Positions 13,163 through 62,100 of a DNA stretch of 64,000 nucleotides are shown here, in pieces. The DNA lies in NCBI GenBank assembly GCA_004431415.1, contig QPMI01000031.1, positions 28,604 to 92,603 on the forward strand, read 5' to 3'. The stretch comes from Cyanophora paradoxa CCMP329. Taxonomy: Eukaryota > Plantae > Glaucophyta. A program made the position numbers and the translations under genes. The first letter of the stretch is position 1. Each line of letters starts with the position of its first letter. The notes beneath the pieces were generated by a model, which saw nothing but the letters and a program-made list of their open reading frames with translations, was not told the DNA's origin and did not search any database.

Positions 13163-13449
13163 ACGGCCCCAGATCTCGCATGCGGGCGACTGGCAGCACA
13201 AGCTGCGACGTTCGATGTGGATGCGCATTGGCGACCGCCGCCCTCCAGCGCTCCCTTGCTCCCCCGGCGCTACGGGCAGGAGCGCTGCGACCGCTGACGA
13301 GGCTAATTGTAGTGTCTGGTTTAGTTTCAGTTATTGAATGTTTAGTGCGTTTAGATGTAGAACAGCGCTTCTCGTATGTGCAATGCGAGTTCGGATGCAT
13401 CGGACTGCGTGCTGGGGGCGGCCGTGGCCGCGGTGCTGGGGGTAGCGGA

Positions 13450-13671
13450 GCCTGATTCAGCCTGATATAAACCTGATATTAAAGCCTGATTGAAGCCTGA
13501 TTCAGCCTGCTTTAAGCCTGATTCAAGCCTGTCTCGGCCTGTTTAAAATCAGGTTTAGTCCTCCGAAATAAGGCTGAGCCTGTTTCGCCAAGCCTGATCA
13601 TGACTCGGCCTGATTGAAGCCTGTTTCAGATCAGGTTGAGACAGGCCCCGGCGACCCCCTTTTTACTAGTG
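13450..13671 (-). mobile_element. CACTA/EnSpm-like transposon terminus with subterminal repeats (solo end)
   Basis: Minus strand begins CACTAGTAAAAAGGGGG at 13671, preceded on the plus strand by an array of ~11-12-bp AGCCTGATT-type repeats. No partner end seen. Confidence 0.55.
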
Positions 13672-26974: not shown

Positions 26975-27462
26975 TCGCGCGGCCGACGCTCCGTAGTCCA
27001 GCCCGACCGAACTCCAAACCCAGCGAACATCGACCGCCCAGCCGCGGCCCCATGCCCGCCACCTCAGCGGAGACAGCAGCCACACCGTCGGATGCGCCCC
27101 CGGACGCACCGACGCCCCGCCCGCTGCTCACGGTCGCCTTTTTGAATGTCGAAAGCCTTGCAGGCATACCTCGGCGCATCTGGCTCACCGGATGGCTCAA
27201 GCGTACCAAAGTGGACGTCCTCGGCATCGTTGACCACCGGCTCAATCCGAAGCAGATCGCGGCCCTTACGCAGCGCATCGAATCATCGTGGCGCGTGCTC
27301 ATCCCGCCCGCCGCAGAGCTTAAACCCAACGTCTGGAGCCGAGGCACCGGTTTCCTCGTCCGCAAAGCCATCCCGGCCCTCCCCGGTGCTACAGCCACGC
27401 TCGTGCCCCTCCCGCCCACGCCGGGCCTGCGGCCGCACGATGCTTCACTACTTCGCCTCTCC
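26975..27462 (+). repeat. 488-bp direct repeat, copy 2
   Basis: Matches 15213-15700 and continues into the rest of the LINE ORF. Confidence 0.95.
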
Positions 27463-35193: not shown

Positions 35194-36062
35194 ACCTCCC
35201 CCCTCTTTTCGATCCCAACGGCCTCGGCCCTTTCGCCCTTTCGGCCTCAGTCTCCTTTTTCACTTTTCTCTCTTTACAATTCGCGGTAGCACGACTGCCA
35301 AAGAAGGGGGCCTCATGACGAGCCCACCGCCCCCCTCTCTGAGTTAGATAGCTCCATGAAGCAATGTCACCTCCCTACCCCGCCCCCGCGCAAAGCCCTG
35401 CCCACCTGCGGGCCCGCCCCCTCCTAAAGCTTTTCCCCCGGCCCAGAAGCTAGTGACAGACTAGCCCCACGGCCGGTACCCCCGCCACGCCCCTCTGTCC
35501 CCCGAACACACTAGGGCGCCCACCCCGCTCGCAACCGACCGCCCCCGCAGCCCCCCCCGATAATGCCTCTCACCAGGACCACATACTCCCCGCGCCCCAC
35601 ACGCCATAAAAAGAAGGGGGCGCGCCCGCTACCCTAGCCCGCGCCGCCCCCACCCCCCCCTCCCCACCCCTCTTCCCCGCCCGATAAGATTGGCCTCCTC
35701 GGCGCCGACGACCCCCCGCACCTACACTCAAGAACACGACAAACGACCCCCTACCACGCCTCCACCCACAAGAGAAACGCTCAGCTGTAGCGTCGAGGCG
35801 CCTATCCCTGTGTTCCGGCCTCAGGTTATGCTCTGACCCAGAGTTCGGCCTATTCCGAACCGGTAGTGCGTACGATGATGTTACTGAACAAATACAATCG
35901 CCACCGCCCTTGATATGGGCTTTGTGAAAAAAAAAAACGTATATTGCAGATCTAGAGCGAGCTCGCACTCGGACCTGAACACATACAGAGCGGATGTAGA
36001 GCCGGCGCCGACCTGTGGAAAAGGAAGCCGTATCATCAGTGGACTGCAGCAGGAGGTAGATC

Positions 36063-36065
<3 letters not shown>

Positions 36066-36129
<64 letters not shown>
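36066..36129. repeat. (TA)n microsatellite
   Basis: About 32 TA units. Confidence 0.98.
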
Positions 36130-36131
<2 letters not shown>

Positions 36132-37123
36132 CTAGCGCTGGCGCCGGCTCTCTAATTTGTATCTAGAATGATAGCATTAATATTGATACATATAGCAACG
36201 ATAGAATGCAAATGTTACCAACGGATCTCGATTCTCGATCGGCGGTTGAATTCGAATTTCAAAATTTAGATTGCCTATTTCATCTAATTATATAACGCCA
36301 GATCCGTACTATAGCTATGATAGTACAGCTGCAACTCTAGATCTAGTACTATAGGTATAGCTAGTGCAGCTGCAAATCATGAATGAATCACCTTGTCCGA
36401 GGCCTAGGACCGTTCAGTTGAGGCGCCGCCCGGAGAAAAGCACTGCGAGCGTATTTGCAAGTCAGTTCCGGTTTATAAAGATCTAGAGTGCTACGAATAC
36501 AGCCACGATCTAGGCTTGATCTGCGCAGACCAGGGGACATGCAAAGATGAAGCCTATTAGCAGTCGTTGACCATGAGGGGCTGCGGGGCTCTAGAACTCA
36601 ACGAGTCTAGATCCTGGCATTATCTTTAAGAATTCAACATTGACGTCTGAAAACGTGACACCTTGACGTCTGAAACCGTGACTCGGTGATCATGACCCAT
36701 GGCCGGCACCTAGCTAGCACCTTCGGCAAGATAGATACACTGGGAGCCAGGAATTAAGTTTACCACATGGTAAACTTGCAACTTCACTCACTTAGGGCTG
36801 ACTTTACCACACCTGTCTTTACCCCACCTAGGAAAGCCGCGCGGGGGAGCACTGCTGCCGTGCTAAATGTGCTTAGCTAGGCATAAGTGCATGGGATCCA
36901 TTGAGCGCCGATGGCCCGGTAGCTTCTGTGGTCCGTCGTGGATGCGAGCACAACTCGTCAAGAGAGCGACGCATGCGGGCTGCCTTGACTGGTTCAAGTG
37001 TTCTAAAAGGTCGTTTAGAGACGATTTGCAGCTTTTAAGGGGAGGTTGTTGGGCGGCCCGACCTCGGCCAACTTCACCCAGGCCCGACCATTATGAGCTG
37101 GGGCGCAGCGCACAGCGCTTTGA

Positions 37124-37622
37124 ATGCGGTAAGCATTGATTTCAGCTACGTTACAACCGAAGTACGGCTGCCACATCGGTGCTCTTGAGACCGATGGCTG
37201 CCAATGGTTGCGTACCGAACGCTCAGACCGAGCGCCGCCGAGGTAGCCGGCGGTGCTAACGCCTCTAGCTAGCTAGATCGCGTGCTCTAGCTAGTTCTCC
37301 GACCGCCGGGTGCCGCCGTTGGAGCCTTGCTGGTGCGGTGGTCGGACGGGTACCCCCTGCGAGTAGTTCCCCCGGGCAAAGTCGCCGGGGCAAAGTCGCC
37401 GGGGCAAACTTGCCGGGGCGAAGTCGCGGTTTCCGGAGCGCAGGATCTGGAGCTGTGTTCTGCTAGCGTCCAAGTGCTGTCGGCGTGGCAAGCGGTCAAA
37501 GTGCTGTCGGCGTGGAAGCGTGGCACGTGGCGCTCGAAAAGGTGCGCCGGAGGCCTTCTTTCCGCACCCATAGCGGCCTTGCGCGTGCGTCCGTGCGGCC
37601 TCCCTTGACAGGAGCGTCTCTC
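37124..37622. repeat. Dispersed module, copy 1 (others at 39806-40312, ~43470-43802, partial 46788-46882); putative bidirectional promoter
   Basis: Tandem 14-bp CCGGGGCAAAGTCG units and two AAGTGCTGTCGGCGTGG units. In the other three copies it lies between divergent genes. Confidence 0.8.
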
Positions 37623-37699
37623 GCGCGGGGCAGCTCCGACAGCGGAGTAGGCAGTCGGCTGCTTCTTCAGGCGCGGCGGTCTCGGCGATCGCTACTGCG

Positions 37700-38830
37700 A
37701 TGTCGGCGGAGCCAAACCGCTCCGTCGAGGTGAGCGTTTTCGCGGACTTGCGGTACTACCCGTGGGGCATCCAGGACCCTGAAGAGACGCAAGGTACTTG
37801 TCGCTTTTGCGACCAGGATGCCATACCATAGAAAACCCCTGTGCAGTTCCTGTGCGAGGCATGGCTGTGCGATTCACGATCAATGTTTCGGAGTCGTGGC
37901 CGGAAGCGTTAGTGGCCGATGTGTGCCGTGAGTATTTCGTGCCCAAATCCAATGTAGCGCTGTATTGGTACAACCCAGAAACCAATGGATTCGAGCGGCC
38001 GGTGCGAAAGTTCCTTGCGTCTGACGATGATTTCTGATGCGGCTTCCGCGAATTCACGCGTGCGCGTGCATGCGCACAGACATCGAAACCACAGGGACCA
38101 TCTCCAGGCGATCTCTTCTACCTCACGGGCGACCAATTTCCGCCGGGAGCGGAGCCCGCACGATACCTGGCAAGATTGGCCGCCCGTTTCTCAAAGGCAC
38201 CAGCGACGGCAGCGACGCAGAACAGCGATGCTCTAGATATAACTTCGCTCGTGCCGCCACCGCTCGACACGCGCGGACTCCTTTGTCTGCGCGCGACGCC
38301 ACCAGTCGAGAATATTAATGAAGGAAACAGCTCCGTAGCGGTGCATGTTGTAGCGGACGATTGGAGAATTATGTCAGGTGCCCATTTATCCCGTTTCAGA
38401 GACATTTCTTACAGAATTAATGGGCCTGTGCAGATCTTGTGCAAGTCAATGATCCGGATTCGGGGTCGTGGCCGGACGCGCTGCTGGCGCGGGCGTGCAG
38501 CGAGTTTCTCGTACCGAAAAACAATGTAGCGCTGTATTGGTTCAACCCAGAAACCAGTGGATTCGAGCGGCCGGTGCAAGCTTTCTTTGCGTCTGACGAT
38601 GATTTCTGATGCGGCTTCCGGATCCGCGAATTCACGCGTGCGCGTGCATGTGCACAGACATCGAAACCTCAGGGACCATCACCGGGTGATTTCTTCTACC
38701 TCGCGGGCGACCAGTTCCCGCGGGGATCCGGAGAACGAGCGCAGGCCTCGAACTACCTGTCGCGAATGCGAGCCATGATTGCTCTGGAAAACATCCGCTC
38801 AATGGCGACGTATAGTGCTAGCTAGCTTCA
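37700..38830 (+). CDS. Paralog of the H3-tail family with two tandem copies of the C-terminal domain and no recognisable H3 tail (possibly degenerate)
   Basis: VALYWYNPETNGFERP|TSKPQGPSPGDLFYL and VALYWFNPETSGFERP|TSKPQGPSPGDFFYL, with the same intron position as the other family members. Confidence 0.55.
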
Positions 38831-39169
38831 TTATTCCTGATGCACTACGCGTACGGCGCCGGCTTCGTCTCGAATACGAATTCGACCAGCATGTATATTC
38901 TCTAGTGGTTTTCGCATACATGGCTCTCTAGAGAATTCGAACTCTTCGATTTATGCGACCGCTAGCGCTCCGCGGCAGCGTTGTCCCAAGGCCGATACGC
39001 TCATTTGCGGCAAAGGATTCGAATTAAGAAAAATACAGCAATCTCTGCGCAGACGAATTCGAATCTCTGTTCCGCTCAGCGGCTAGCTATAGCGTGCATG
39101 GCGCCGGCGGCCACGACTTCGAATAAGATGCAGCTGTCGGGCCGCTAGGGGCCTTGAAACGGGCAATAG

Positions 39170-39807
39170 CTAGGATCCGAAAACGGTCGCCAGGAAGGGC
39201 GCGTGCTCGACTTCTGGGATCACCGAATCCCTCGCGACGTAGTACAGATCATCCGGGGATGGCCCTGGACTCGACCTCTGTGCACGCGCAAGCGTGAATT
39301 CGCGAATGCCGCATCATGATCAGAAATCGAGGGAAGACGGAAAGATATCTTGCACCGGCTCGAAGTACTCGGCAAAGAACTCGAGGTAAATGAAGCACCG
39401 ACTTGCTGGGTCGTATCGATACATCATCAGCGCATCAGGGTGCGCGTGGTATGTGCTGCGGACGAGTTCACGGTACGCAGCCTCCAGAAGATCTGTCTGC
39501 CACGTCTCTGAAACATAGATCTTCAATCTAACAGGCCCTGCGCTGTTTAGATTAGGGCACAAGCTTAAGGCATCGATGCAACCGTGGTCGCACCTGTCAT
39601 ATCAGTGATGCCCACCGGAAGGGGCCGGCAGTCCCCGAGAACGCGCACCTCGACAGAGCTGCCCGCGTTCTCGAGCCGCGATCGCGGCGCGTACAGAGCA
39701 ATCAGCGCTTCCGACTCGGCGACCTGCTCTTCTGTTGGCTCTGGTACTGGTGGCGCCGACCGCGGCTTCCGTGAAGTAACGAGCTGTTTTCGAATACGTT
39801 TCCCCAT
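39170..39807 (-). CDS. H3-tail-mimic family, copy A (3 exons)
   Basis: MGKRIRKQLVTSRK...PTEEQVAESEALIALYAPR...VEVRVLGDCRP|GPVRLKIYVSETW...YRYDPASRCF|PGPSPDDLYYVAR. Introns 39538-39593 and 39278-39355. Confidence 0.7.
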
Positions 39808-40316
39808 GCGGTAAGCATCGATCTCAGCTACTTTACAAACGAACTACGAGCGCCAAGTTGGTGGTCTCGAGCTCGAGACCGATGGCCGCGTACCGAACGC
39901 TCAGACCGAGCGCCGCCGAGGTAGCCGGCGGTGCTAAAGCCTCTAGCTAGCTAGATCGCGTGCTCTAGCTAGTTCTCCGACCGCCGGGTGCCGCCGTTGG
40001 AGCCTTGCTAGTGTGGTGGTCGGACGGGTACCCCCTGCGCGTAGTTCCCCCGGGCAAAGTCGCCGGGGCAAAGTCGCCGGGGCAAACTTGCCGGGGCGAA
40101 GTCGCGGTTTCCGGAGCGCCGGATCTGGAGCTGTGTTCTGCTAGCGTCCGAAGTGCTGTCGGCGTGGCAAGCGGTCAAAGTGCTGTCGGCGTGGAAGCGT
40201 GGCACGTGGCGCTCGAAAAGGTGCGCCGGATGCCTTCTTTCCGCATCCATGGCCATGGCGGGGTTAAGCTGCGCGTGCGTCCGTGCGGCCTCCCTTGACA
40301 GATGCGTCTCTCAGGG

Positions 40317-41200
40317 ATGGATGCACACGAGGAGACGAAACGCGAGTTCGAAGAGAGCGGCCAGGAGCGTGCGGAGAAACGCCAGCTGGAGACTTTCCAA
40401 GACGCCGGGGCGAACTTTCCGGAGCGAAGTCGCATGAGCGCTATTAAGCGCCCGCGTGCCGGAGATGCGTATGATGCGAAGGACGCAAAGGATGAAGTAC
40501 GCGCGGTCACACTTCATATCGCTACATCCAGCGTGCGTCTGCTCGCTCGCGCTTCGAATTCTTTGCTCGCTCGGCCACAAATTTAAACCACGCGCGCAGG
40601 AGATGCCCGTGGTCACTCTCGAAATCTCCAGCCCCGCCTGCATCGTCGTGCGGCCCGCCCGCCGGCGCCCTCTTGCTCGTTTTCTCAGACCAGCCGGCTT
40701 GCCATTGGCACAGGACCCGGAGCAGAGCACCTTCAAGCCCAAGCAGCGGCTGCCGGCAGAGGGGCTGGCCATCATCGAGGCCACCCTGCGTGCCCACCAG
40801 CCCCGCACGGTCGCATTGCGGCTTGAGAAGTGCGCGCGGCTCCCGAGCGCCGCCTCGTGCACTAAGTGCAGCCCGCAGCGCCCGCCTCGAGGACATTCCG
40901 GCATCGCTGCAGGATATCCTCGTCGAGAAGGTTGCGCACATCCACCTCGTCGGCGAGACCACGCTGCACCCGTTCCCAGAGGAGAACGCAGAGTCGGCCC
41001 TCGTCTATGCTACTATGTCGGACCTTCGCAAGCGTGGGCTGCTCACGATGACCATGTCGCCCGAGGTGCGGCACGGCCATGGCCAGCTAGCGCCCTCCCT
41101 TTCCTCGACCCCGCCCATCTGCAACCCAGGTACCCTGGCTCGTGGACCCCCTCAAGTTCGTTTGCGGCAAGTTGCCACCCTACAACAAGATTTTCCAACG
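40317..41200 (+). CDS. Hypothetical multi-exon protein, divergent partner of copy A
   Basis: Start MDAHEETKREFEES is homologous to MNAHEETKRKLEES at 43807. Downstream exons are protein-like; end uncertain. Confidence 0.45.
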
Positions 41201-42815
41201 GTTTAACACCTTCATGGAGCACATCTACGGCCCCTTCCTGTGAAATCAATCAGGGCAGGCACTCGTTATGCACTACGGCGCCGACATGTAATGCGCTACC
41301 TCAGTAGCTCTGAAACCCTGACTTCAATTAAATAGTGCACGCCTCCGCCTCGCCTATCGCCGGAGTCGACATTAGCAGTTGACGACGCTCAAATGGCAGG
41401 CGCGCGCTTTAGGCGAGAAAGCGCCATCGCTGAGCTACATGAAGCTCTCCACGCGTACATTCATGGGTTGCCGCTGCCCACAAGGGAGCCGACAAGTCGA
41501 CAACCGGCATCTTCGATGACAGGTGCATGCACATGCAGTTTTGCGGTCAAACCAGAATTGAGGAGAAACAGATCAAAAACCAAACCAGAACCAAGCTCGC
41601 CAAGATGTTCGAACCAGGGTGAAAGTGTCCAAATGGATTCCTGGTGCGAGGGTATCCGGGATTAGCTATGTGTCACTTGCAGTGATGTGTTCGGCATCGA
41701 TACCGGTATATTCGGATCCAGGGTATTGATTGAGTTTCCAGCTCAATCGCGAGCGTCTGCAGCTGGCATGGCTTATGTGAAGGCAGCACAGAAAACCCAT
41801 CGTGACATTCTTGTGCATGGTACACTCAAGATCTAAATATCGCGCGCAGTGATGTGTTCGGCATCGATACCGGTATATTCGGATCCAGGGTATTGATTGA
41901 GTTTCCAGCTAAATCGTGCGCACACATACATATGTTATTGAGTCCGTTCTGCTAATCCTTATAATCTCTGCGAAATGCACTTGCAGTTTGCGAAATGCGA
42001 GAGCGCAATCCCAAGTTCTTCGAGAGCCTTGAAACAAAGTAGTTTGAATTACACAGCTCTCTCGTCAAGAACTGCTCCACGTGCACCAGCACAAGACGAG
42101 AAGCACATGTTGGTGTCGCATGCAGGTAAAAACCATTGCACGTTAATCAACACATGAATTAATTGAATGTATACGCAGGGTTTCTATTCGCTGTTCCCTC
42201 TTATGCAGTACGTACACTACCAGGAATCTCGATAAATATAGCCAGCGAACAGATCTAGAGCGAAGCTTACAGACGGTATATCTTTCCAATAGACTATTAC
42301 CATCCGGACTTAAGCATTTCCTTGCCTCCCCAAAACTCTATTGCTAGAATAGTTATAGCAATCAGAAGGTCAGGTACATATGCACGCAGACATGCAGCTT
42401 GTTAAAGATCCGGCCGCGGAGGTAAGGCTCCTAGGAAACGGTACAGGTAGAATTTGTAATGTAGAACTTAGGTAAGGCTTGGTAGCCCGAGTGTATACGT
42501 AGTGGTATCCTGTTCGTGTCGTAGATTTGTTGTGTAATATGATGTGTTAAATATATTTGAATCGTTGTGTAAAGTTTCGGATTTCCAAAATTCGTGCTGC
42601 ACTACGGCGCCGGCTTCGACTTGGATCCGAGACGAATGCGACCAGCATGACTACTATATAGTTCACGTCTCCTGCTACTCAGAATTCGAATTCGAGAAAA
42701 CAATACAGCAATCTCTGTGCAGAAGAATCTGTGTTTGGCTAGTGCGCATGGCGTCGGCGACCACGAATAAGATGCAGCTGCGGACCCGTACTAGGTCCTA
42801 GGGGATTTGCACTGG

Positions 42816-43444
42816 CTAGGATCCGGAAACGGTCGCCAGGAAGGGCACGTGCTCGATTTTCGGGACCACCTCATGCCTCGCGACGTAGAACAAATCATCC
42901 GGGAATGGCCCTGTACTCGACGCCTGTGCACATGCACGCGTGAATTCGGGAATGCCGCATCAGAAATCAAGGTAAGAAGCAAAGATCGCTTGCACCGGCG
43001 GCTCGAAGCAACGGCTTTCTGGATCGTACCAATAGAGCGCAAGCCCGCTAACATTGCCTACAGAGTTGCATTCGCAGTCCAGGTCGAAGTAAGCCTGGAT
43101 CAGAAGGTCTGTCTGCCACGACATAGAAACATCTATCCTGACGCGCACTGGCCCTGCCTGTTGAGATCAGGGCACACAATCAGGGGCAACGATGCCGGGT
43201 TGCAATTGCACGTGTGCACCCGTCTTTTCAGTGACGCGTAGCGGGGAAGGCCGGCAGTCACCGAGAACCCGCACCTCGACTGAGCTGCCCCGTGCACGAG
43301 CCGCGGTCGTGGCGCGTATAGAGCAATCAGCACTTCCGACTCTGCGATCTGCTCTGCTGTCGGCGGCATGCGCAGCTGTCCCGCTGTCACTCCTGACTTC
43401 CTTGCAGCTTTGGTAGCGAGCTGTTTTCGAGGTACTTTCTGCAT
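42816..43444 (-). CDS. H3-tail-mimic family, copy B (apparent frameshift near 43290)
   Basis: MQKVPRKQLATKAARKS gives 14/15 identity to H3 K14-S28, followed by the family domain. Confidence 0.72.
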
Positions 43445-43806
43445 TCTGGAACGCAGTCCGACAGCGAGCGAACCGAGCGCCGCCGTCTTTGGAGCCTTGC
43501 TGGTGCGTGGTCGAACGAGTACCCCCGGCAGGAAGTTCCCCCGGGCAAAGCCGCCGGGGCAAAGTCGCCGGGGCAAAGTCGCCGGAGCACTGTCGCGGTT
43601 TCCGGAGCGCCGGATCTGGAGCTGTGTTCTGCTAGCGTCCGAAGTGCTGTCGGCGGGGCAAGCGGTCAAAGTGCTGTCGGCGTGGAAGCGTGGCACGTGG
43701 CGCTCGAAAAGGTGCGCCGGATGCCTTCTTTCCGCATGCGCACCCATATATAGCGGCCTTGCGCGTGCGTCCGTGCGGCCTCCCTTGACAGTAGCGTCTC
43801 TCAGGG

Positions 43807-44697
43807 ATGAATGCACACGAGGAGACGAAACGCAAACTCGAAGAGAGCGAACAGGAGGTTGATTATGAGCTTGAGACGGAGGAAAGCGGCCCGGCGCGTG
43901 CGGAGAAACGTGCGCGAGATGAGGCGTCGCGGCGGCAGCTCGAGAAGCAAGCGTCAGCGGAAGCGGTGGCGGAGATTCATCGACGTCTGCGGAAGGCTGA
44001 GGAGCGGGCTGCAGCCGCCAAGAACGACGCAAGAGCTCTCAGCGACGACGAAGAAGTGGAAGAGCGGCCAAAGGAGGTTCCGTGTCGTACCTGTGTCGAG
44101 AACCCATCATCCCCACTGTGCATATGCGCCATCATCCTGGGTATCGAAAGTGCCAGCACTTTGCACGAACTCCCTATGGACGTTCGGCCCTTCGCTAATT
44201 TGGCGCTTCGGATTGCCAAGCTCCACCGGCAGTCGCGGGCCTTCGACATCCTCCCCCAGTCGGGCGAGGACAGCGATCGCGAAGGAGAAGGTGAGGACAC
44301 GAATTACTGCACCACCCTGATTGAATCTCTGCCGTCGGAGGGGGAGGGGAATCTGGACCTGAACAGTGCGCATGGCCTTCTGTTTTAATTTACCCCGAGA
44401 AATTTTGCTTTCACAGAGCCAGTGATCATGAGCACAGGGGGACTCTGGGAGGACATCTGTATGGTCACCCTCGAAGGTTTTCAAGTGGTGAAGAGCCCGC
44501 TGCGCATGTTTCAGCTCTGTGATGGTGGTTTCCGCGTTTGCGATCCTCTTCATCCGTCCGTGGATGAAGCGCTTCGCGACCTCTGCGGACTCTGCCTCAG
44601 CAACAGCGACCTCGAGTTCTTTAGGGACATTTCCAAGCGCCTGAAAGAAAAGCAGGCCACTGAACAAGCACGCAAGCACATTTTGCATGACTTTTGA
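43807..44697 (+). CDS. Hypothetical 2-exon protein, divergent partner of copy B
   Basis: ORFs 43807-44388 and 44422-44697 join across a GT-AG intron. Charged N-terminus and a CxxC...CxC cluster. Confidence 0.55.
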
Positions 44698-45083
44698 CAT
44701 CTTGCATGTACCTTTGAACAAGCACGCAATAGTATACTGCAGCTGAAGCTTGAGCACCTCAACCTCGGAACCAACCTCAACGGGGCCGGGGCAGGGGGGG
44801 GCACGTAATTGTATTCGGAAACTTTAACTCTTCGATGGTTTTCGCATACATAGTTCTCTGGAGAATTCCAACTCTTCGATTTATGCGATCGCGGCCGCGG
44901 CAGCCATGCCCCAAGGCGCTCTGAATTCGAATTCGAGAAGACAATACTGCTACCAATCTCTGTGCACAAGAATCTCTGTTCGGCTAGCTTGCATGGCGCC
45001 GGCGGCCACCGCTAGCGTGCATGGCGCCGGCGTGCAATTCGAATAAGATGCAGCTGTCGGACCGCTAGGGGCCTTGACACTGG

Positions 45084-45723
45084 CTAGGATCCTGTAACGG
45101 TTGCCAGGAAGGGTGCATGCTCGACTTCCGGGATGATTTCCTTCATTGCCACGTAGAACAGGTCATCCGGGGATGGCCCTGGACTCGACGCCTGTGCACA
45201 TGCACGCGTGAATTCGGGAATGCCGCATCAGAAATCGAGGTAAGAAGCAAAGATCGCTTGCACCAGCGGCTCGAAGCACCGGCTAGCTGGGTCGTACCGA
45301 TAGAGCGACAGCTCGCGGCGATCAATGGGCACCGGTGTGCAGCGCAATTCCCGGTACGCTTGGGCCAGAAGATCTTTCTCCCACGTCTTTGAAACATACA
45401 GCTTGATTCGCACAGGCCCTGCGCGGTTGCAATTAGGGCGCACTGGCAGAGCAACGATGAACCGGACACATGTGCACCTGTCATTTCAGTGACGCGTGGC
45501 CGAGAAGGGCGGCAGTCCCGAGAACGCGCACCTCGACAGAGCTGCCCTCGAGCTCGTTCTCGAGCCGCGGTAAACGTCGCGGCGTGTATAGAGCAATCAG
45601 CGCTTCCGACTCTGCGACCTGCTCCGCTGTTGGCTCTGGATCGGGTACGAATCGTGAAGTAGGCGGTGCTTTCTTTGGTCTGGGTCTAGTGCCGAGAACT
45701 TTGCGGGGAGCTTTGCTTGACAT
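45084..45723 (-). CDS. H3-tail-mimic family, copy C (possible frameshift)
   Basis: MSSKAPRKVLGT...PTAEQVAESEALIALY...VEVRVLG; GPVRIKLYVSKTW...LYRYDPASRCFEPL. Confidence 0.65.
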
Positions 45724-46051
45724 TGCTTCTAGAGATGCGCGGCCGCAACGTTAACCCCAATGCCTTAATGTTTACCCCCCGGTGGGATTACCCCCTGGGC
45801 ATACTGACCGTGACTTCGTTCGCGATTCAGCTCTGTGATGGTGGTTTCCGCGTTCGCGATCCTCTTCATCCGTCCGTGGATGAAGCGCTTCGCGACCTTC
45901 GCGAAATCAATGCCGATACATTAAATCGCGACGAAAATTCGAATTGACAAAACGAAGTACAGCATTCCCTGTTCAAATATCGTGCATGGCGTCGGCGGCC
46001 ATGAATTCCAATAAGATGCAGCTGTCGGGCCGCTAGGGGCCTTGGCACTGG

Positions 46052-46682
46052 CTAGGATCCGGAAACGGTCGCCAGGAAGGGCGCGTGCTCGACATCCGGT
46101 ATTACCGAATTCCTCGCCACGTAGACCAGGTCATCCGCGAATGGCCCCAGCGGACTCGACGCCTGTGCACATGTTCGCGTGAATTCGCGAATACCGGATC
46201 AGAAATCGAGGTAAGAAGCAAAGATCGCTTGCACCAGCGGCTCGAAGCACCGGCTAGCTGGGTCATACCGATACAGATCCAAAGTGCGGAAATCGATTAC
46301 GTACGCATGACAGTTCAGGTCCATGTACGCACGGGCCCGAAGAACTCTCTGCCACGACATTCGAAAGTTTGAAATATCTATCGTGACTCGCACAGGCCCT
46401 GCGCTGTTGCGATTAGGGCTGTTGCGAGGCAAAGATGCAACCGGGTTGGACCTGTCATTGAAGTGACGCGTAGCGGGGAAGGCCGGCAGTCACCGAGAAC
46501 GCGAACCTCGATAGAGCTGCCCTCGTTCTCGAGCCGCGGTCGCGGCGTGATAGAGCAATCAGCGCTTCCGACTCTGCGATCTGCTCTGCTGTCGGCTGTC
46601 GGGACTCTGTCGCTGCTGACTTCCGTGAAGCTTTGGAAGCGAGCTGCTTGCTGCTTGCTGCTGCTTCGTCGCCGCGCTGCAT
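46052..46682 (-). CDS. H3-tail-mimic family, copy D (possibly pseudogene)
   Basis: KQLASKASRKSA...PTAEQIAESEALIAL plus the family domain, with frameshifts. Confidence 0.6.
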
Positions 46683-46989
46683 GTTCGAAATCCGCAGGAA
46701 TGCGCAGGCGCACCGTGATCTACTGCGCGCAGGCATGCGCAGGCATGAAATCATGAGCGCCAGACTCGATCTACTCAATCTGCTGGGTGCCGCTTTTGGA
46801 GCCTTGCTGGTGCAGTGGTCGGACGGGTACCCCCCGGCAAAGTAGTTCCCCCGGGCAAAGTCGCCGGGGCAAAGTCGCCGGGGACACTTGGAGCGAAGAC
46901 GCGAGGAAAGCTCCAGTACGCAAATTTAGAGGTATGCAAACCCGCCCGAACCGTGGAATCAACCATTTGAACGCACTGCCGCATACGCA

Positions 46990-49687
46990 GGTCAAAACCT
47001 CGTCCGGAGCGCCCTGCAGCGGAGCACCTCGGGTTTAAAGCTCCGGTTCTCACAAGTAGAGGTAGGCAAACCTGCAGATCCGTGGAATCAACCATTTGAA
47101 CGCAGCGCGGCACACGCAGGTCGAAACCTCGGCCGAAACCTCTTGCAACTCCGAGCTCAAGCGGGTACTTGGGGAGAAGCGAGAAGCTCCCGCAGTAATG
47201 CACACGCAAAGGCTGTTCACTCGAGCCCACGCACTTGCAGATGTGCGCCCGTGCCTGTGCTGTGTGAATGCACGTGGACTTGCAGCTGAGTGTGCAACAG
47301 GTTGAGAACACGTTCAGAGCCCTCCTTTTGGATTCGAAGAACACTCCGCTCTTCATTCGTCCGAAGTGGCTTTTCGGTTCGCCGAAGGAGCAGGGAATAT
47401 CGTTCCTTGGAATCGCGTCACCCAATTTCCGGATATGCATTGACAGTACCTTCCTCGCATCGGACAACCACAGAGCAACTTTGGTGCCTCTGTTTGATCC
47501 AAGCATCGTCTACTGCGGGGTGTGGAGTAACAGCACGGAGCACGTCGAAAGGATTCGTAAAACTCTTGATATCCAGTGGCCGTCACTTCGGGCGATCGAA
47601 ATCGACGACCTAGCCACCGCAGCGAAGCTGGACGGAACCTTGCAGAAAGACAGAAGACAAAAAGGTCTCAAATCCGGAATCCAGGATCTTTCTACGGAAT
47701 TTTTGCGTAAGGCGTTCGAGAAACCTGAGGATTTCAGATTCTTCGGGACTGGCTGGGACAGCGCCGAAGTGGACGAGACGAGGCTGGCCTTCGCTTTTCG
47801 GGAATTGGAAACAGGCATCGGGATTATCAAAGTCATTTTAAAAAGGGTGGGGTTGAAGCTGACTTCTGCAAAGTTTTCGCTATCACTATCTATCGCTCTC
47901 GCAAACTTCCGCTATCGTTTAGTATCCGGAGACGAGCAGGAGGTTTGTCCTCGACGTCTGTGATAAAGAGGTGAGCTTGCTTTACTTCTGCTTTTTCAAC
48001 CCGGCTGTTCTGCTGTTAATTATAATCGCAGGATGCACGTGTTGCTCTGGAGCTGAGCAAGTCTGAATGCGTCGACGGTGGAAAAGATGCATCCGCTCCG
48101 ACACTGACACCTTCGATGCAAAAAGAAAAGGATGCTTCGAACAAACCTTTCCCTCCCATTTCATTCGTCCCAGCGCAAGGTGCCTCAAATCTCCAGTCGG
48201 AATGGTCTTCAACCTATGGAGGCTGTCACAAACACACTGGTGACACGATGAAAGACAGTCTATCTATCCCTCGGATAAGTTGAATTCCGGCTCGCAGGTA
48301 CCGGTTCTCAGAATGCCGAACTTCGGGATCCGGAGGAGATTCGATGCTTGCAGCAGCAGGTGAAATCACTTCAGGATGATAACGCCTTACTTCGACAAGC
48401 GAAAGAGCGCGTCGACGGTAAATGCCTTTTTTGCGTTCAGCTATAACTGCTTTCAGTTAATTAGTATCCGCGCGTAATCCCCCGCTGCAGCCCCCGACTG
48501 CAGCGGCTGCAAGGAAAACGCTTTCCTGGTCGCCCAGCTGCAGCGGCTGCAAGGTCGAATCGCTCAGGGGCGCCTTCGTTCATTCTTCTTTTGAAACGTC
48601 TGCAGGCCTCCAGAATGAGAATGCTTCCCTGCTCGCCCAGCTGCAACGGCTGCAAGGTCGAATCGCTCAGGGGCGCCTTCGTTCATTCTTCTTTTGAAAC
48701 GTCTGCAGGCGTCCAGCATGAAAATGCTTCCCTGCTCGCCCAGCTGCAACGGCTGCAAGGTCAAATCGCTCAGGGGCGCCTTCGTTCATTCTTCTTTTGA
48801 AACGTCTGCAGGCGTCCAGAATGAGAATGCTTCCCTGCTCGCCCAGCTGCAACGGCTGCAAGGTCAAATCGCTCAGGGGCGCCTTCTTTCATTCTTCGTT
48901 CGAAACGTCTGCAGGCATCCAGAATGAGAATGCTTCCCTGCTCGCCCAACTGCAGCGGCTGCAAGGTCGAATCGCTCAGGGGCGCCTTCTTCCAGTCTCC
49001 TCTTGAAACGTCTGCAGGCGTCCAGAATGAGAATGCTTCCCTGGTCGCCCAACTGCAGTGGCTGAAAGGTCAAATTGCTCGGGGGCGCCTTCTTTCATTC
49101 TTCGTTTGAAACGTCTGCAGGCATCCAGAATGAGAATGCTTCCCTGGTCGCCCAGCTGCAGCGGACCAATGGTGTTTTTTTAGACTGCTTTTCGATTTAG
49201 GTCTCGATTTGACCGTTTCCCGTGCGTGTAGCTGTGAATGCAGCTCCCCAAGCGCAACTGCAGCGGCTGACCGGTTTCCACTTCGCCGTTTTCTCGGAAT
49301 TGGGATTTCTGAGTGACTGATAATGACTGCAGCTATGAATGCGGGTCTCCAATCTCAGAAGAAAGCTCTTCGTGGTACGCTATCTCACTCCTTCGCGGTA
49401 CATTCAATTTCCGGCCTTGAGTATGGGTATCTTAGATGAAGTCACGACGCTTCGTGGTACGGCGGTTTTCCTCCCCGATGATTTTATGAACGTCGCGGTA
49501 CATTTATGTTTACACCTCGTTCGCGATTCTTTGTAAATGTCAGCTGAAATTGCGACACTGCGAGGTATGGCGGTTCCCCTCGGATGCATTTTTATTTACT
49601 CCGATGCTGATATTGTGATCAGCAAAAATCGACGACCTGGAGGATGCTGAATTCCAGCGCCTGTTCGAAGGCGTGCTCAATATTTAG
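46990..49687 (+). CDS. Degenerate DnaQ/WRN-type 3'-5' exonuclease-like domain + coiled coil built from repeated mini-exons
   Basis: EIDDLATAA...SGIQDLSTEFLRKAFEKP....GWDSAEVDETRLAFAFRELE resembles the WRN-exo/RNase D C-half (DL..GL..L...L.K...S.W....L...Q..YAA.DA) with exoIII Y/D replaced. Start uncertain. Confidence 0.5.
48510..49165 (+). repeat. Tandem 103-bp exon+intron repeat (~6.5 units)
   Basis: GTCTGCAGGC recurs at 48598, 48701, 48804, 48907, 49010 and 49113. Each unit is a 51-nt exon (GVQNENASLLAQLQRLQ) plus a 52-nt GT-AG intron. Confidence 0.92.
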
Positions 49688-49908
49688 ACGTGTGATCTTC
49701 GTTTAAATCACAATTGAATTTCAGTATTGCACTGAACCTGCTGTTCAAATACGATTTAATCGGGAAGCTTCCACACAGTGCATACTCAGGCCACGGTCAT
49801 AGAGGAAGGAGGGGGGGGGAAGAGAAGGGGGGGGGAGTGCCGAACTTACCGCGGCCGGCAAAAAAAGCCGGCTTGGCGTGCAGTGCTGCCACAACTCGAA
49901 GCTGCTGG

Positions 49909-50540
49909 ATGGCGAAAGTGAAAGAGAGAGCGCGTATGTCTACAGGCGGAAAAGCTCCTCGAAAGAACCTCGCACAGCGGCCGCGGCCGCCGACAGCGGA
50001 GCAGGTCGCGGAGTCGGAAGCACTGAATGCTCTTTACGCGCCACGACCGCGGCCCGAGAACGAAGGCAGCTTTGTTGACGTACACATTCTCGGCGACTGC
50101 CGGCCTGCCCCGCTACGCGTCACTGCAATGACAGGTGCAAATGTACACCGATTCACCGTTGCTCTGCCAGTGTGCCGTGAACTCAACAGCGCATGCGCAG
50201 GGCCTGTGCGAGTCACGATCCGTGCTTCGGACTCGAATGCGTGGAAGAGCGAGCTACTGGACCTGGCGTTCGAGGAGCTGCACTGCAGTACGCATGTGCA
50301 CCTCGAGGAGCTGGTGCTGTATCGATCTCGGTACGACCAAGCAGGCTGGTACTTCGAGCTTCCGGTGCAAGCGATTGTTGCGTCTTACGGTGATTTCTGA
50401 TGCGGATCTCGCGAATTCACGGGTGCGCGTGCACAGGCGTCGAGTCCGGGGCCATCCCGGGAGATCTGTATTACGTCGCGAGGAGGGATATCATCCCGGA
50501 AGTCGAGCATGTACCTTTCCTGGCGATCAATCAGGAATAG
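49909..50540 (+). CDS. H3-tail-mimic family, copy E, carrying K9M (1-bp frameshift near 50458 in the last exon)
   Basis: [22 protein letters not shown] aligns ungapped to H3 [21 protein letters not shown] with Met at position 9 (ATG 49936-49938). Introns 50135-50200 and 50365-50436. Confidence 0.78.
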
Positions 50541-50639
50541 TTGCAAGTGCCGGCATCCCTTCCCTAGTCCGGATTTCGTAGCCAAAAATACGCGGATGTA
50601 TTATACGTATACGCGGCGGCACGGATACAACAGGAGCGC

Positions 50640-51749
50640 CTAATTGCCAGCGCTGTAGTGCAACACGAGCGCCTCAAATTCTCTCCTACGGCGCTCTATG
50701 TAGTCTCCATCTAAATCTAGATCTAGAGGGTTGCCTCGCATTTCGCGCTCTGCGAAGTCCAGCAACCAGATCCCGCACTAGCGAGCGTGGTCAGCCGTTG
50801 CCACTGGCCACGGGCGGGAGTGAAAACAGCACTAACCTGATGGCCGTCATGCTGCACTGCTCGCTGTACCGATTGGATGACGTCAATTTCATGTTTCAAG
50901 AGAATTCTTGCGAGCTTGCGCGGAGCCTTCGCGCCAATGCTGTCGTAGTATCTGCAGACCTTGCCGTCGATAACCAAGAGTGTCCAGTGTCGTCGGTTGT
51001 TGACGGGGACGAGAGCGCGTGTGCTGGTGCCATTCAAGTGCTCGAGTAACGCTTCTATGTAGGATTCAGCGTCGTGGAGGGCGAGCGGATGTGCGATGAA
51101 CCAATTCTGTGTGACTGCCTCCTTGGCCGCCGCCGCGCGGATGCAAACGAGCGCGCTCTCGATTGCGCTCGATGACAGCCACAAATCCCGGCTGCAGCTG
51201 AAGCTGAGCTGATGCCGAACTAGATCTGCGCTAACGATCTTCGGCCGCGCCTTGACTGTGCCCAGCTCCTCCAACTCAGAAGAGGGCTCTGGGTCACCAC
51301 ACTGCAGCTGTCTTTGCCGCCGTATGCGCTTCTTTAAAACTACAGGAGAGGGCTTCGGATCTGAATCATCACATTGCATATCCCGCCGGCGCTTCGCTGC
51401 CTTCGCGGAGGCCATCTGCGAGGATCCGGAGAACGGACGACCTAGGCCTGCAGGGGAACAAGCCCGCATGAGTTCCAGCGGCGAACTGTAAAGGCAGAGC
51501 ACGAAGCGGGCGTGCACATTCACGAATGCCGAAGTCGACGGCTATATCTATCAACGTTCAACGTTCAGCGCCGTTGATCATGACAGGCCACGCGGCGCCC
51601 GAGTCCACGTCAGCGAGGCTGCCGGCGATGGCTAAGCCTCCGGCTAGCTGTTTTACGCGCTCTAGCTCGATCTCCGACCACCGGTCACCGCCTGAAAGCT
51701 TCGAGACTTGCTGGCGGCATTGAGCGCACGTGTACCCCACTAGTCCCAT
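50640..51749 (-). CDS. Ulp1/SENP-like C48 cysteine protease (SUMO/NEDD8 deconjugase)
   Basis: WLSSSAI...LVPVNNRRHWTLLVID...YYDSIG...QHDGHQ|CGIWLL gives intact His-Asp-Gln-Cys catalytic motifs once the intron at ~50778-50836 is removed. 5' exon uncertain. Confidence 0.85.
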
Positions 51750-51906
51750 CCCGGGCCGTCCGGGCCGTCCCGGACGAGACCAAGATCCAGCAATCTAGCG
51801 TCTGCACAAGGCAGCGCGGCGCGAGCTCGAGGAGCGCGACTCCCCAGTTTCCAGTTTTCCGACAGGATCTAGCGACTCTCGGAAGTTTCGAGGCGCGCTC
51901 GCTCTA

Positions 51907-52542
51907 ATGGCGAAGACAAAACAAAAGGCGCGAAAGTACAACGGATCGATTCCTCAGAAGAAAATGCCTACCAAAGCTTCAAGAAAGCGGAAGTCAGAGC
52001 CGGAGCCCGACCCGTCAAAGAAGCAGGTGCCCGAGAACGAGGGCAGCTCTAAAACTGTCGAGGTGCGCGTTCTCGGCGACTGCCGGCCTGCCCCGCTACG
52101 CGTCACTTCAATGACAGGTGCATGCCCGGTTGCATCGTTGCTTCTGCTAGTGTGCCGTGATCTCAACAGCGCATGCGCAGGGCCTGTGCGAGTCACGATC
52201 CGTGCTTCGGACTCGAATGCGTGGAAGAGCGAGCTACTGGACCTGGCGTTCTTGGAGCTGCACTGCAGTACGCATGTGGATGACCGCGGCACTCTGGCGG
52301 TGCATTGGTACGACCCAGCAAGCCGAACCTTCCAGTCGTTGGTGCAAGCGATCTTTGCGTCGTATACGTACGGTGATTTCTGCTGCGGATCTCGCGAATT
52401 CACGGGTGCGCGTGCACAGGCGTCAAGGGCGCAGGGGCCATCCCCGGATGATCTGTTTTACATTACGAGGAATACAGTTGATCCGGCCGTCGAGCATGTA
52501 CCTTTCCTGGCGGATCCGGACGCAGTGATAGAGCTTGACTAG
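51907..52542 (+). CDS. H3-tail-mimic family, copy F (K4, K9 and K27 equivalents retained)
   Basis: MAKTKQKARKYNGSIPQKKMPTKASRKR resembles H3 1-27, followed by an intact family domain. Confidence 0.75.
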   Translation: MAKTKQKARKYNGSIPQKKMPTKASRKRKSEPEPDPSKKQVPENEGSSKTVEVRVLGDCRPAPLRVTSMTGACPVASLLLLVCRDLNSACAGPVRVTIRASDSNAWKSELLDLAFLELHCSTHVDDRGTLAVHWYDPASRTFQSLVQAIFASYTYGDFCCGSREFTGARAQASRAQGPSPDDLFYITRNTVDPAVEHVPFLADPDAVIELD

Positions 52543-52647
52543 CCCATGGCCGTGGCTGGAATTGCGTTTGCATGTTCGTGCTCTCATGTATGAATTGTTC
52601 ACTTCGAGTGACTGTCTAGCTGAAATGATTGACAATTGCATGATCGA

Positions 52648-54750
52648 TTACACGATAATAATGCATTTCGAGAGGGACTGCATCTCTAAGATACGATTTT
52701 TTATCGTCTTGATCTCATTGTCGACATTATCGCTCTGTGCTTTGATCAGAGCGTTCTTCTGGCGCACATGATCGAGAAGTGACGCAAGCGCTGTTTCAAG
52801 AACGTCGAAGGACGTCGCTTGCAATTGCTGGTTGAGTGTTCCTAGGGCACGCGTTGCGTCGTAGTTGACATCGGTTTGAGCACCAGAAATCATGAGTGCC
52901 ATCTGCGCAGCAGGAAGCTCATTTATGGCACCACAAATCTGGAAACTGCAAAAAAGAACGTCTGCGAAAGAGAGGTGCAGACGAACCTTCTTATTAAGCT
53001 CATGTAGCTGTGCGAGGAGGTTAACAATACACCTTATTCTCTCTCCAAGTGCCCGGTCGAAGACAACTTCGTTGCGCAAGTAGATATCTACAAGATGCAG
53101 CTTTTCTAAGGATGGCGCCTTCTCGAACGCCCCGACCACACACTGAGCAACATATTCTGGGATTGCGCGCATTGCATCTGTTCGCTGTTCATAGCCAGTC
53201 ACTCCAACCAGGCGGAGGGTTTCCAGAGATGAGCACTGCGAAGCGATCTTCGTGATGGAGGTGACCAGCCAGTTGCGCTCGACACGTAAGACTTGTGCTC
53301 CATGAGCGTCAGAGGGTGCAAGCGGAAGGATCAGCTCGCGAAGGCTGCTGAATCGTAATGTCTTTGCGAGTTCCGCGAGACGATTCGGTGATAATTTACG
53401 GAGCTGTGCCACGGTTGCATGTGGAACTGTGCATGCCACCAGGTCCAGCGTGATAAGAGATTGACACTTCCGCGCTGCTGATAAGATTTGCTCGTAATCA
53501 CGCCCGTCCTCCAGCGTGAAGCGCAACGTTTGCGTGAAATTGCTTAGATACCGTTCCATCTTATTTATATTCGTGCTGTCGCTCTTAATGATGCAATTGA
53601 TGAACGAAATATGTTTGAGACAGCACGAGTCGGGAGAGCAGAAGAACTGGACGACTGGATGCGAAGCTGGGCGGATGCGAGTTGCTGTGAATTCGACATG
53701 GAGCTCCTCCGTGCATTCCCCCGCCGTATGATGCAATACCAGAGATGCCGGCCGCGGTGGGGCCATTGACGAGTCATTTTGGATGTCCCGAGGCTCGTCA
53801 GATATCTGCAATCCAAATCAGGCTGCTCGAATATAAATAGTGGCAGGTCGTGCACATTGAAAATCATGGACGCGGGCGCTGGACGAAAGAGTCCTGGGGT
53901 TTTCAGCTCTAGGCCTTCGCTTGTTAGACATCCTTTGATGATGACTTTCTTGGCACTGAAAGCCCAGTAGGAGAAGGAACCCGCAGCTTCTTGAAACATG
54001 ATGGTTTCTTGGTCGACACATAGCTCTTCGACCGTCCCAAATGACGTGTCATCAGGCCCGCAGTCACGAAAGCTGCAAATTATGAAAAACTGTTTGTCAG
54101 CTTCTGGTTCTGAATGGATTACGTAAACGAATACGTAGCGAATTTGGACTTACTGAACGGGCCCCCGAATACCTGCGTTGGTAACAGAGTTCGATACGGC
54201 TCGATGCTGGCTATTTCCTCCGTTTCACGGTGTGCGCGAAGGCTTGCGCTTGCCTTGTCGTCCAGAATAAGACGGCGAGGCGCCGTCTTCAAGATAAGGT
54301 GGACCCAGTCAAAATGAATGGCCTCAAGGTCGTCGGAACCACACCCTGTGCAGATTCCTAGGCACCGCTTGGGCTTCTCAAAGAAACGCTGTATGCTGTC
54401 CAGGAGGATTGCAAGTTTCTTAAACGTCTTTGGCTGCTTCCATAATTCCGAGGCAAAGCTGGAGGAAGCGAATTTGATGCTACCGCCATGCTCTAGGATC
54501 CACTTCGCGCGAATCCACACCCTTTCAAGCAGGAGAGCCGGAATTGTGTCAAGAAAGATGGTCGCGGTGCGGACGCGCTTCAAGCCATTGCCCTGTTCCA
54601 CGAGAATCCTGTAGAAGCGCCGGCTGCTACTCCACAGAGCTCGCACGGACTCGAGGCGTTCATTAGGAACCATGCTGGCAATTATGGCGATGGCATCGTC
54701 TGGAAGATCATTTATCGTTATGGTTGCCTTTCTTGTCGATTCGAGCCTGT
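52648..54750 (-). CDS. F-box / LRR-like protein, multi-exon
   Basis: TINDLPDDAIAIIASM...LWSSSRRFYRIL (F-box); LITLDL, LRELIL, LETLRL, LEKLHL (LRR-like). Confidence 0.7.
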
Positions 54751-60613: not shown

Positions 60614-60629
60614 TATTCTTACGTATAGC

Positions 60630-62100
60630 TAGTGTACAATGAGCAATCATGACTCCGGGGAAATTGAAGCCGGGCCCGGGGCTCATGAATGATATCGATA
60701 ATGATCATCATGGCATCGGACCACGACTTGCGATCGGAGCAGGCAGGGCAGCCAGGCCCGGGGCTTATGATCATATCATGACTCATGACGAGCCCAGACC
60801 CGGGCCTCATGATCAGCTCTTGCTCCCACACTAGGCAAGCCAGGCACGCCGCCCAAGGTCCCGTCAGCTCCGCCCCAAGTTCCCCGCTGGCTCAGCCCAA
60901 GACCCCCGGCCGCCCTGTGCGCCCGCGTAACCCCCCCCCCCCCCCCGAAGCCGGTCCGCGTACCCCCCATCCCCCCAGGCATGCGGCCCCGCCCCCCAGC
61001 GCCCGCCAAGGCCCCCCGACCCTGCCTGGTGCCGACTCCCCCGCCAAGATCCCCCTTCCCATTCCACCCCCCGACCCCCAGCGCCCGCCAAGGCCCCCCC
61101 GACCCTGCCTGGTGCCGACTCCCCGCCAAGACCCCCCTTCCATTCCACCATCCCCGGGGGGCTAGTTAGAACTCGGAAGGCAGTTTGGGTAGGTCCAGCC
61201 CTCCTAGCAACGAATGTCCTGGCCCGGCTATATAATAGCCTATATTTACCAGCGTTCAGGTCGCATTTGTGGTCTCTGCCAATACAACAATGCCCCGTAT
61301 GGCTATTTGGAAAAAAGCTAGTGTACAATGAGCAATCATAACTCCGGAGAAATTGAAGCCGGGCCGGGGCTCATGAATGATATCGATAATGATCATCGGA
61401 CCGTACCACGACTTGCGATCGTGACATCGGCTACAGTTGAAGGCAGGCCTAGGGCAGCCAGGCCGGGGCTTATATGATCATATCATGACTCATCATGGCA
61501 TGACGAGCCCAGGCCCGGGCCTCATGATCAGCACCGTACATGCGCGTGGCACGGCGGCAGTGGCAGAGGCGAGGACTCCAGGAGCTAGAGCCCTCAGGGC
61601 GCCCGGCCTCGGAGGCGCCGGCCCCGGGGCGAGGTACCGGTGGGATCACAGCTGCAGGCCCTGAGGCAGGGCAGCCAGGTCCGGGGCTCATGATCATGTC
61701 ATGTCTCGTAATGAGCACTGACTCAGTGAACATGTGGCAGTGCGGCATTGGCAGACTTTGAGATCTTTAGGAAGCCTTGAAGGGAGCCCGCGGAGGCCCC
61801 TGGGGCCCAGGCGGGGAAAATGTGACTTCCGCTGCAGGGAGGGCAACCAAGCCCGGGCCCGGGCCTCATGATCATGAGCATGATTCGTGATCAGCACCGT
61901 ACATGCGCGTGGCACGGCGGCAGTGGCAGAGGCAAGTAGCCCCGGGGCGCCGGCGGCGAGGTGCGATCACATGTACAGCCGCTGAGCTGCAGGAAGGGCA
62001 GCCATGCCCGGGGCCCGGGCTCATGATCAAGATCACGACCCGTGCCCGGCCATCGGAACGTTAACTCCAGTACATGATCATGATTGGTCCTAGTACACTG
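60630..62100. mobile_element. Non-autonomous TIR element (MITE-like) with a duplicated left end (60630 and 61319)
   Basis: Left TAGTGTACAATGAGCAATCATGA versus right end reverse complement CAGTGTACTAGGACCAATCATGA. Internal GGCCCGGGCCTCATGATCA-type repeats. No TSD found. Confidence 0.6.

Follow-up and report, generated by a model that had tools for sequence, protein, structure and literature searches.

Histone H3-tail fusions on a probable ubiquitin-fold domain in a gene cluster of Cyanophora paradoxa: possible element-borne decoys

Few cases are known of selfish DNA that resists histone-based silencing, and the histone mimics described so far are short, convergent motifs. Influenza H3N2 NS1 (ARSK), SARS-CoV-2 ORF8 (ARKS) and adenovirus protein VII each carry H3-tail-like sequence on a non-histone protein, and are proposed to engage host chromatin factors in this way (PMC10208167). 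Here we describe a cluster of six paralogous genes, copies A to F, that share this property and lie in a 64,000-nt stretch of the Cyanophora paradoxa CCMP329 genome (contig QPMI01000031.1, positions 28,604 to 92,603, forward strand; hereafter the window). Whereas the viral mimics are motifs of 4-5 residues in single proteins, the cluster presents 15-27 residues that evidently come from an H3 gene, varied over six paralogs with one carrier domain. Copies E and F also resemble cellular proteins with H3 N-terminal mimicry in K4 and in the Ala1 start predicted for them (PMC8166343), and copy E resembles EZHIP in placing Met at the position of a methylated lysine (PMC6513997). These cellular mimics and EZHIP, however, are large host proteins with short motifs and demonstrated binding, and they have no ubiquitin-fold carrier, whereas binding by the cluster proteins is putative.

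Two further systems invite comparison. The VANC and KIU proteins of VANDAL (Mutator-like) transposons are likewise rapidly evolving cargo, associated with a Ulp1 domain and presumed to be in conflict with host silencing (PMC5735166, PMC13317346). Unlike the cluster proteins, which join an H3 tail to a probable beta-grasp domain in a window where we found no transposase, VANC binds DNA motifs, removes DNA methylation and has DUF1985/DUF287, for which the cluster proteins gave no Pfam match. Integral ubiquitin-fold domains (RA/RBD, FERM F0/F1, PB1, PKD ULD, RAWUL) share with the cluster domain its predicted beta-grasp topology and the lack of a C-terminal Gly-Gly, but not its sequence (4-18% identity in structural alignments). 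The family is no histone, having no histone fold; no modifier, having no Gly-Gly; and no VANC, having other domains.

The cluster consists of intact, selected and transcribed genes. An earlier note on this DNA, made from the letters alone, had described six three-exon paralogs, and DNA alignment together with a splice-site search confirmed them at the same coordinates, with two GT-AG introns at homologous positions in each (Table 1). Intron 1 is in phase 1 behind the VEVRVLGDCRP motif region and is free in length (53-66 nt); intron 2 is in phase 0 ahead of the GPSPDDLFYV motif, and the frame of exon 2 is kept in every copy. The C-terminal domain is present in all six, though it measures about 110 residues rather than the roughly 100 first estimated. 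Identity among the copies of this domain is 51-68%; the proteins diverge fast. We found a seventh gene, absent from the earlier note and here called gene X, which bears the domain and branches as outgroup to copies A-F (100/100 support). From X to F the cluster spans 14,843 nt. The left part of the window is GC-rich (78% GC, with short GC-rich introns), while from 36 kb onward it becomes GC-poor and palindrome-rich, and this island, which holds the cluster, has 54-56% GC against 78% in host genes.

The N-terminal tails are derived from H3, as the earlier note had recognized. All six beat 5000 shuffles when compared with H3 1-38 (p 0.0002-0.001; gene X, p 0.23), they are the top six loci in a six-frame scan of the island, and solved H3 chains are matched by copies E (E-value 3e-4) and B (9e-4). 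In H3 register, F spans residues 1-27 and E residues 1-21 with Met at K9, both starting at the H3 Met. Copy B is identical at 14 of 15 positions over 14-28, and its tail, KVPRKQLATKAARKS, lies at 43394-43438 as previously reported; in A, C and D, 10-11 residues of the stretch 13-30 survive. Common to all six tails is K18, plus L20 or M, and each copy retains, besides K18, either K14 or a basic residue at 23. The idea of a panel of tails centred on K4, K9, K14 and K27 goes too far: the tails do differ and all contain some of K14-K27, but K4 is confined to E and F, K9 to F (where it precedes Tyr, not Ser) and a full ARKS site to B. H3 residues 1-11 are lost or replaced in four of the six copies, and A, B and C start at new Met codons 1-3 residues ahead of K14. 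The simplest history would be that H3 residues 1 to ~31 were captured once and that new start codons later shortened the N-terminus. The cluster proteins gave no Pfam histone match, and the predicted fold is alpha/beta. A lone GGKAPRKR at 42418-42447 (+), between the partner gene of A and copy B, lies in a short frame that lacks a start codon and may be what is left of a further H3-tail copy, or chance.

H3 residues are retained at the protein level while their codons drift. Among codon pairs that keep the H3 residue in both paralogs, 35/88 differ synonymously. In neutral simulations at 0.25 changes per site, about half of the pairwise synonymous divergence, the 14/15 retained by B had p 0.003 and an intact S10-K18 in E (9/9) had p 0.01. 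The ratio of nonsynonymous to synonymous rates (dN/dS) was 0.59 (0.46-0.73) overall, 0.60 for the domain and 0.43 (0.22-0.79) for the tail, a poorly aligned region near saturation. All 8 domain copies are stop-free, an outcome seen in 0 of 2000 neutral simulations. Taken together, the synonymous codon differences, the simulations and a dN/dS below 1 indicate that selection is real but loose, and neutral decay of the captured fragments, which the earlier note had raised against its own proposal, is contradicted by the same simulations, the lack of stops and the dN/dS of both tail and domain. Copy E could in addition inhibit H3K9 methyltransferases as a naturally occurring K9M 'oncohistone', since its Met falls exactly at K9 within an otherwise H3-like 1-21, and K-to-M-like inhibition is known for EZHIP (PMC6513997). 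This strikes us as quite improbable: a single base change (AAG to ATG) is enough and yields an in-frame start codon at 49936, like the new Met starts of A, B and C, and the whole of E 1-21 is no better kept than under neutrality (p 0.15-0.33).

In the window sequence, copies B, C, D and E each contain a 1-nt frameshift. The spliced models were built with N/X at these four breaks, which gives six proteins of 163-169 residues. We aligned short-read contigs of four runs over 42750-48700, and those of run X2, which is DNA-like, supply the missing base at full depth behind 43287 (B), 45516 (C) and 46549 (D). The extra base stands exactly where the three frames break, and the frameshifts of B, C and D (3/3 tested) are assembly errors, with the proviso that contigs lose rare variants, so that a minority copy might carry a real deletion. 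Contig depth is no measure of copy number. The break in E, near 50457, falls in a C run outside this read comparison.

Transcripts, whose absence would have counted against the family in the earlier note, were found in sequencing runs none of which is listed on record as RNA. Intron 2 of copy A (39278-39355) is removed at the predicted sites, as a contig from run X15 reads across the exon 3-exon 2 junction: it carries two copy-A-specific differences in exon 3 and then 30 bases identical to the A exon 3-exon 2 join. The 5' part of copy C is contained in an adapter-flanked cDNA contig, 45536-45781 (run X6), with a template-switch end ~55 nt above the ATG; the adapters of this run are SMART cDNA adapters. 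Contigs of X6 are unspliced over B and D, which says little because X6 is also unspliced at 48239-48296, an intron that X15 shows spliced. A cDNA-library contig at 43878-45028 covers the + strand partner gene of B unspliced and extends into the 3' flank of copy C; it may be antisense read-through or DNA. That the genes are pseudogenes carrying decaying H3 fragments might be suspected from the frameshifts in four of six window copies and from the low expression. We reject this as very improbable, since the contigs restore the frames in all three copies tested, dN/dS is below 1, no stops occur, the proteins are near-equal in length and the RNA is spliced.

Intron 2 is more conserved than the exons (86% vs 66-80%). 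Its length is a multiple of 3, always 72 + 6n, and it is open except for one UGA in 7/8 copies, replaced by TGC in F (the intron of B, for instance, is 42924-42995). Selenocysteine insertion or other read-through of intron 2 as the main form is ruled out by the spliced copy A contig and the absent selenocysteine insertion sequence, none being found in A, B, C, E or X by Rfam or by pattern. Nor did we detect a conserved RNA structure in this intron, with no compensatory pairs and z near 0 in 5/6 copies. Its conservation possibly reflects an intronised piece of exon, a binding site or gene conversion.

The shared domain probably has a beta-grasp (ubiquitin-like) fold, on a low-confidence model and with no single score decisive. 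Models were made for copy F from a translation that retains its two introns in frame, so that residues of intron 1 form the first modelled strand. Both models show the order strand-strand-helix-strand-strand-strand, with a predicted local distance difference test score (pLDDT) of 76-80 for the exon 2 core and near 30 for most of intron 2. The top 50 structure matches are all beta-grasp, in VIA (best Z 7.2, root-mean-square deviation 2.5 Å, 80 residues) as in Foldseek (best E 0.024), and an Atlas search returned RA, PB1, FERM and other ubiquitin-like clusters at TM 0.41-0.48. It is the uniformity of the match list that supports the assignment, which the earlier note had offered from the hydrophobic pattern. 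No sequence match to a Pfam Ubl family was obtained beyond weak feature matches (0.81-0.83). As no Gly-Gly follows the last strand in any of the C-termini, the domain would be an interaction or carrier module and not a conjugated modifier. With contiguous (unspliced) queries, which lower sensitivity, no homologue of the domain was found in Pfam, PDB sequences, protein databases (queries F and E), exact look-ups, or the viral and metagenome contigs searched. A profile search with exon 2 alone (62 positions) gave four matches among 1.84 billion proteins; these are tape-measure, RHS, Kelch and ankyrin proteins whose weak repeat scores had added up, and all were rejected. A literature search for the architecture and its context also found no description, in agreement with the earlier impression that this is not a described family.

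Given the fusion, the intact frames, the purifying selection and some transcription, the best reading of the cluster is that of an element-borne histone decoy, which we put forward tentatively and rate somewhat below an even chance. It is supported by the H3-derived tails, their retention at the protein level, the low GC of the island and an Ulp1-like neighbour as in VANC/KIU cargo. A small ancestral ubiquitin-fold gene would have captured the coding sequence for residues 1 to ~31 of the H3 N-terminal tail, and the fusion would then have been amplified to six copies in a GC-poor block that is probably a large mobile element of the glaucophyte C. paradoxa. The tail may take the proteins into the nucleus, where free tail could compete with nucleosomal H3 for host writers, erasers and readers of K14, K18, K23 and K27, and of K4 and K9 in the case of E and F. 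By analogy with the cellular mimics, removal of Met from E and F would leave the free Ala1 that PHD readers require (PMC8166343). The non-conjugatable ubiquitin-fold domain might be a stable carrier, or might link the tail to the ubiquitin/SUMO machinery as an adaptor, for instance to the adjoining Ulp1-type protease. The block itself would gain by being silenced less strongly, in a host that represses repeats via CpG methylation (PMC12344493), and divergence of the copies may reflect an arms race. The fullest version of this proposal, in which a giant mobile element with diversifying H3-tail decoys on a ubiquitin-fold carrier, including a K9M inhibitor, plus an element-borne SUMO protease, blunts host heterochromatin, we regard as possible but doubtful. 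If decoys are what these genes encode, they would show directly, and in a form open to testing, how tail titration can counter silencing in a lineage close to the root of plants, and would be an undescribed anti-silencing strategy of transposons. The six natural tail variants offer themselves as probes of the H3 sites that matter.

Several observations weigh against the decoy. The 64-kb window, off which the island runs, yielded neither a transposase, helicase or capsid gene nor termini that enclose the cluster; the fold model has a mean pLDDT of 52.7 and a best Z of only 7.2; and RNA support is thin, with few contigs at a depth of 2-15. In copies A and C only ~10 H3 residues are left and the ARKS site is not intact, gene X bears the domain without any tail, and the core that the tails share is the importin-binding segment, H3 11-27 (PMC7752055). 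This last point fits a different explanation, in which the captured tail is only a nuclear import signal (or a basic DNA-binding patch) and the fast-evolving ubiquitin-fold domain is the active part. Importins contact H3 11-27 and have two pockets that accommodate K14 and K23 (PMC7752055; PMC5677370), and all copies keep K18 plus K14 or a basic residue at 23, the loss of residues 1-11 in four copies and the tail-less gene X fit as well, and the tails of A and C have drifted to generic K/R/P. Yet non-basic residues are near-exact (QLAT in B, STGG in E) and residues 1-9 are kept in E and F, which is beyond the need of a generic signal, and import does not require six diverging versions. We consider import alone unlikely, though it is the strongest of the rival readings. 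The import-signal and decoy readings are not exclusive, and even with the tail as an import signal the cluster would be a ubiquitin-fold orphan family new to description, and would show clearly that an exon was captured from a histone gene.

The genes could also be a host family of chromatin regulators or adaptors, comparable to the cellular H3-mimic proteins and EZHIP, that spread through segmental duplication within a compartment rich in genes and poor in GC, rather than selfish cargo. Spliceosomal introns, transcription and purifying selection would all be expected of host genes, no mobility gene was seen in the window, and the PacBio-based, haploid assembly contains 34.7 Mb of duplicated sequence (PMC6704402). 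In contrast, no homologue occurs in the collections searched, the tails have a GC content at third codon positions of 0.40-0.56 vs 0.87 in one host gene, dN is high, and the neighbours are typical of element cargo. A host family appears improbable to us.

Table 1. Genes and other features of the cluster (window positions)
Feature	Position	Strand	Remarks
Gene X	37700..38825	+	two tandem domain copies; same intron positions as A-F; no H3 tail; 284-aa model
Copy A	39170..39807	-	167 aa, intact; exons 39807-39594, 39537-39356, 39277-39170; tail resembles H3 13-30
Copy B	42816..43444	-	163 aa; introns 43219-43154, 42995-42924; tail at 43438-43394
Copy C	45084..45723	-	169 aa; introns 45477-45419, 45263-45192; tail KAPRK at 45714
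Copy D	46052..46682	-	168 aa; introns 46451-46399, 46234-46163; tail resembles H3 18-29
Copy E	49909..50540	+	164 aa; introns 50135-50200, 50365-50436; start Met in H3 Met register; Met at K9 is ATG 49936
Copy F	51907..52542	+	164 aa spliced, 211 aa if unspliced (also open); introns 52118-52180, 52342-52419; whole H3 1-27 recognisable
Shared upstream element	39806..40312		also 37124-37622, 43473-43802, 46782-46903, partly 51614-51738; 86-91% identical
Partner gene, head-to-head with B	43807..44697	+	paralog at 40317 head-to-head with A; RNA-type X1 contigs 43824-44024, 44365-44530
3'-5' exonuclease-like domain with a coiled-coil region of 103-nt exon/intron repeats, between D and E	47268..49700	+	transcribed, spliced at 48239-48296
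Ulp1/SENP-type protease-like gene, between E and F	50723..51415	-	SENP2, E 0.0014; Peptidase_C48, E 0.087, below cut-off

Copies A, B and D and gene X have a common upstream element that sits between head-to-head gene pairs. The transcript of the + strand partner has its 5' end within this element, as judged from an X6 contig with the template-switch adapter. Gene X itself occupies the partner-gene position at this shared promoter. The partner of B gave no Pfam match. Behind the exonuclease-like domain, at 48520-49164, a 103-nt unit of exon plus intron is present in 6.3 tandem copies and encodes a coiled-coil, heptad-like repeat. We considered a fusion of copy E to this upstream gene, which is unnecessary because a Met in H3 register is present in E itself. 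The Ulp1-like protein also contains a KAPRK; its counterpart in the SENP2 alignment is a K..R stretch, and we took the motif as chance. Beyond the cluster we noted leucine-rich repeat (LRR)- and F-box-like genes by eye, which have no Pfam support.

Repeats elsewhere in the window include a CACTA-like terminus at 13449-13671 (CACTAGT at 13671, -) with subterminal AGCCTGA repeats, which is oriented leftward, away from the cluster. The search for Helitron 3' ends in the window yielded only a doubtful one, at 51743. A 14-bp direct repeat (15087-15100/35937-35950), a candidate target-site duplication, flanks 15101-35937, which has a poly(A) end and may be one 20.8-kb insertion with a long interspersed nuclear element; if this is one insertion, the GC-poor island may begin near 12-13 kb. 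The segment 15213-15700 is identical (100%) to 26975-27462. Within 36000-53000, palindromic hexamers occur at roughly double their frequency in shuffled sequence, and a large number of the indels consist of 6-nt duplications by which palindromes arise. Between F-box/LRR-like genes, at 60627-62090, lie dispersed repeats in which the palindrome core TCATGATCA is abundant.

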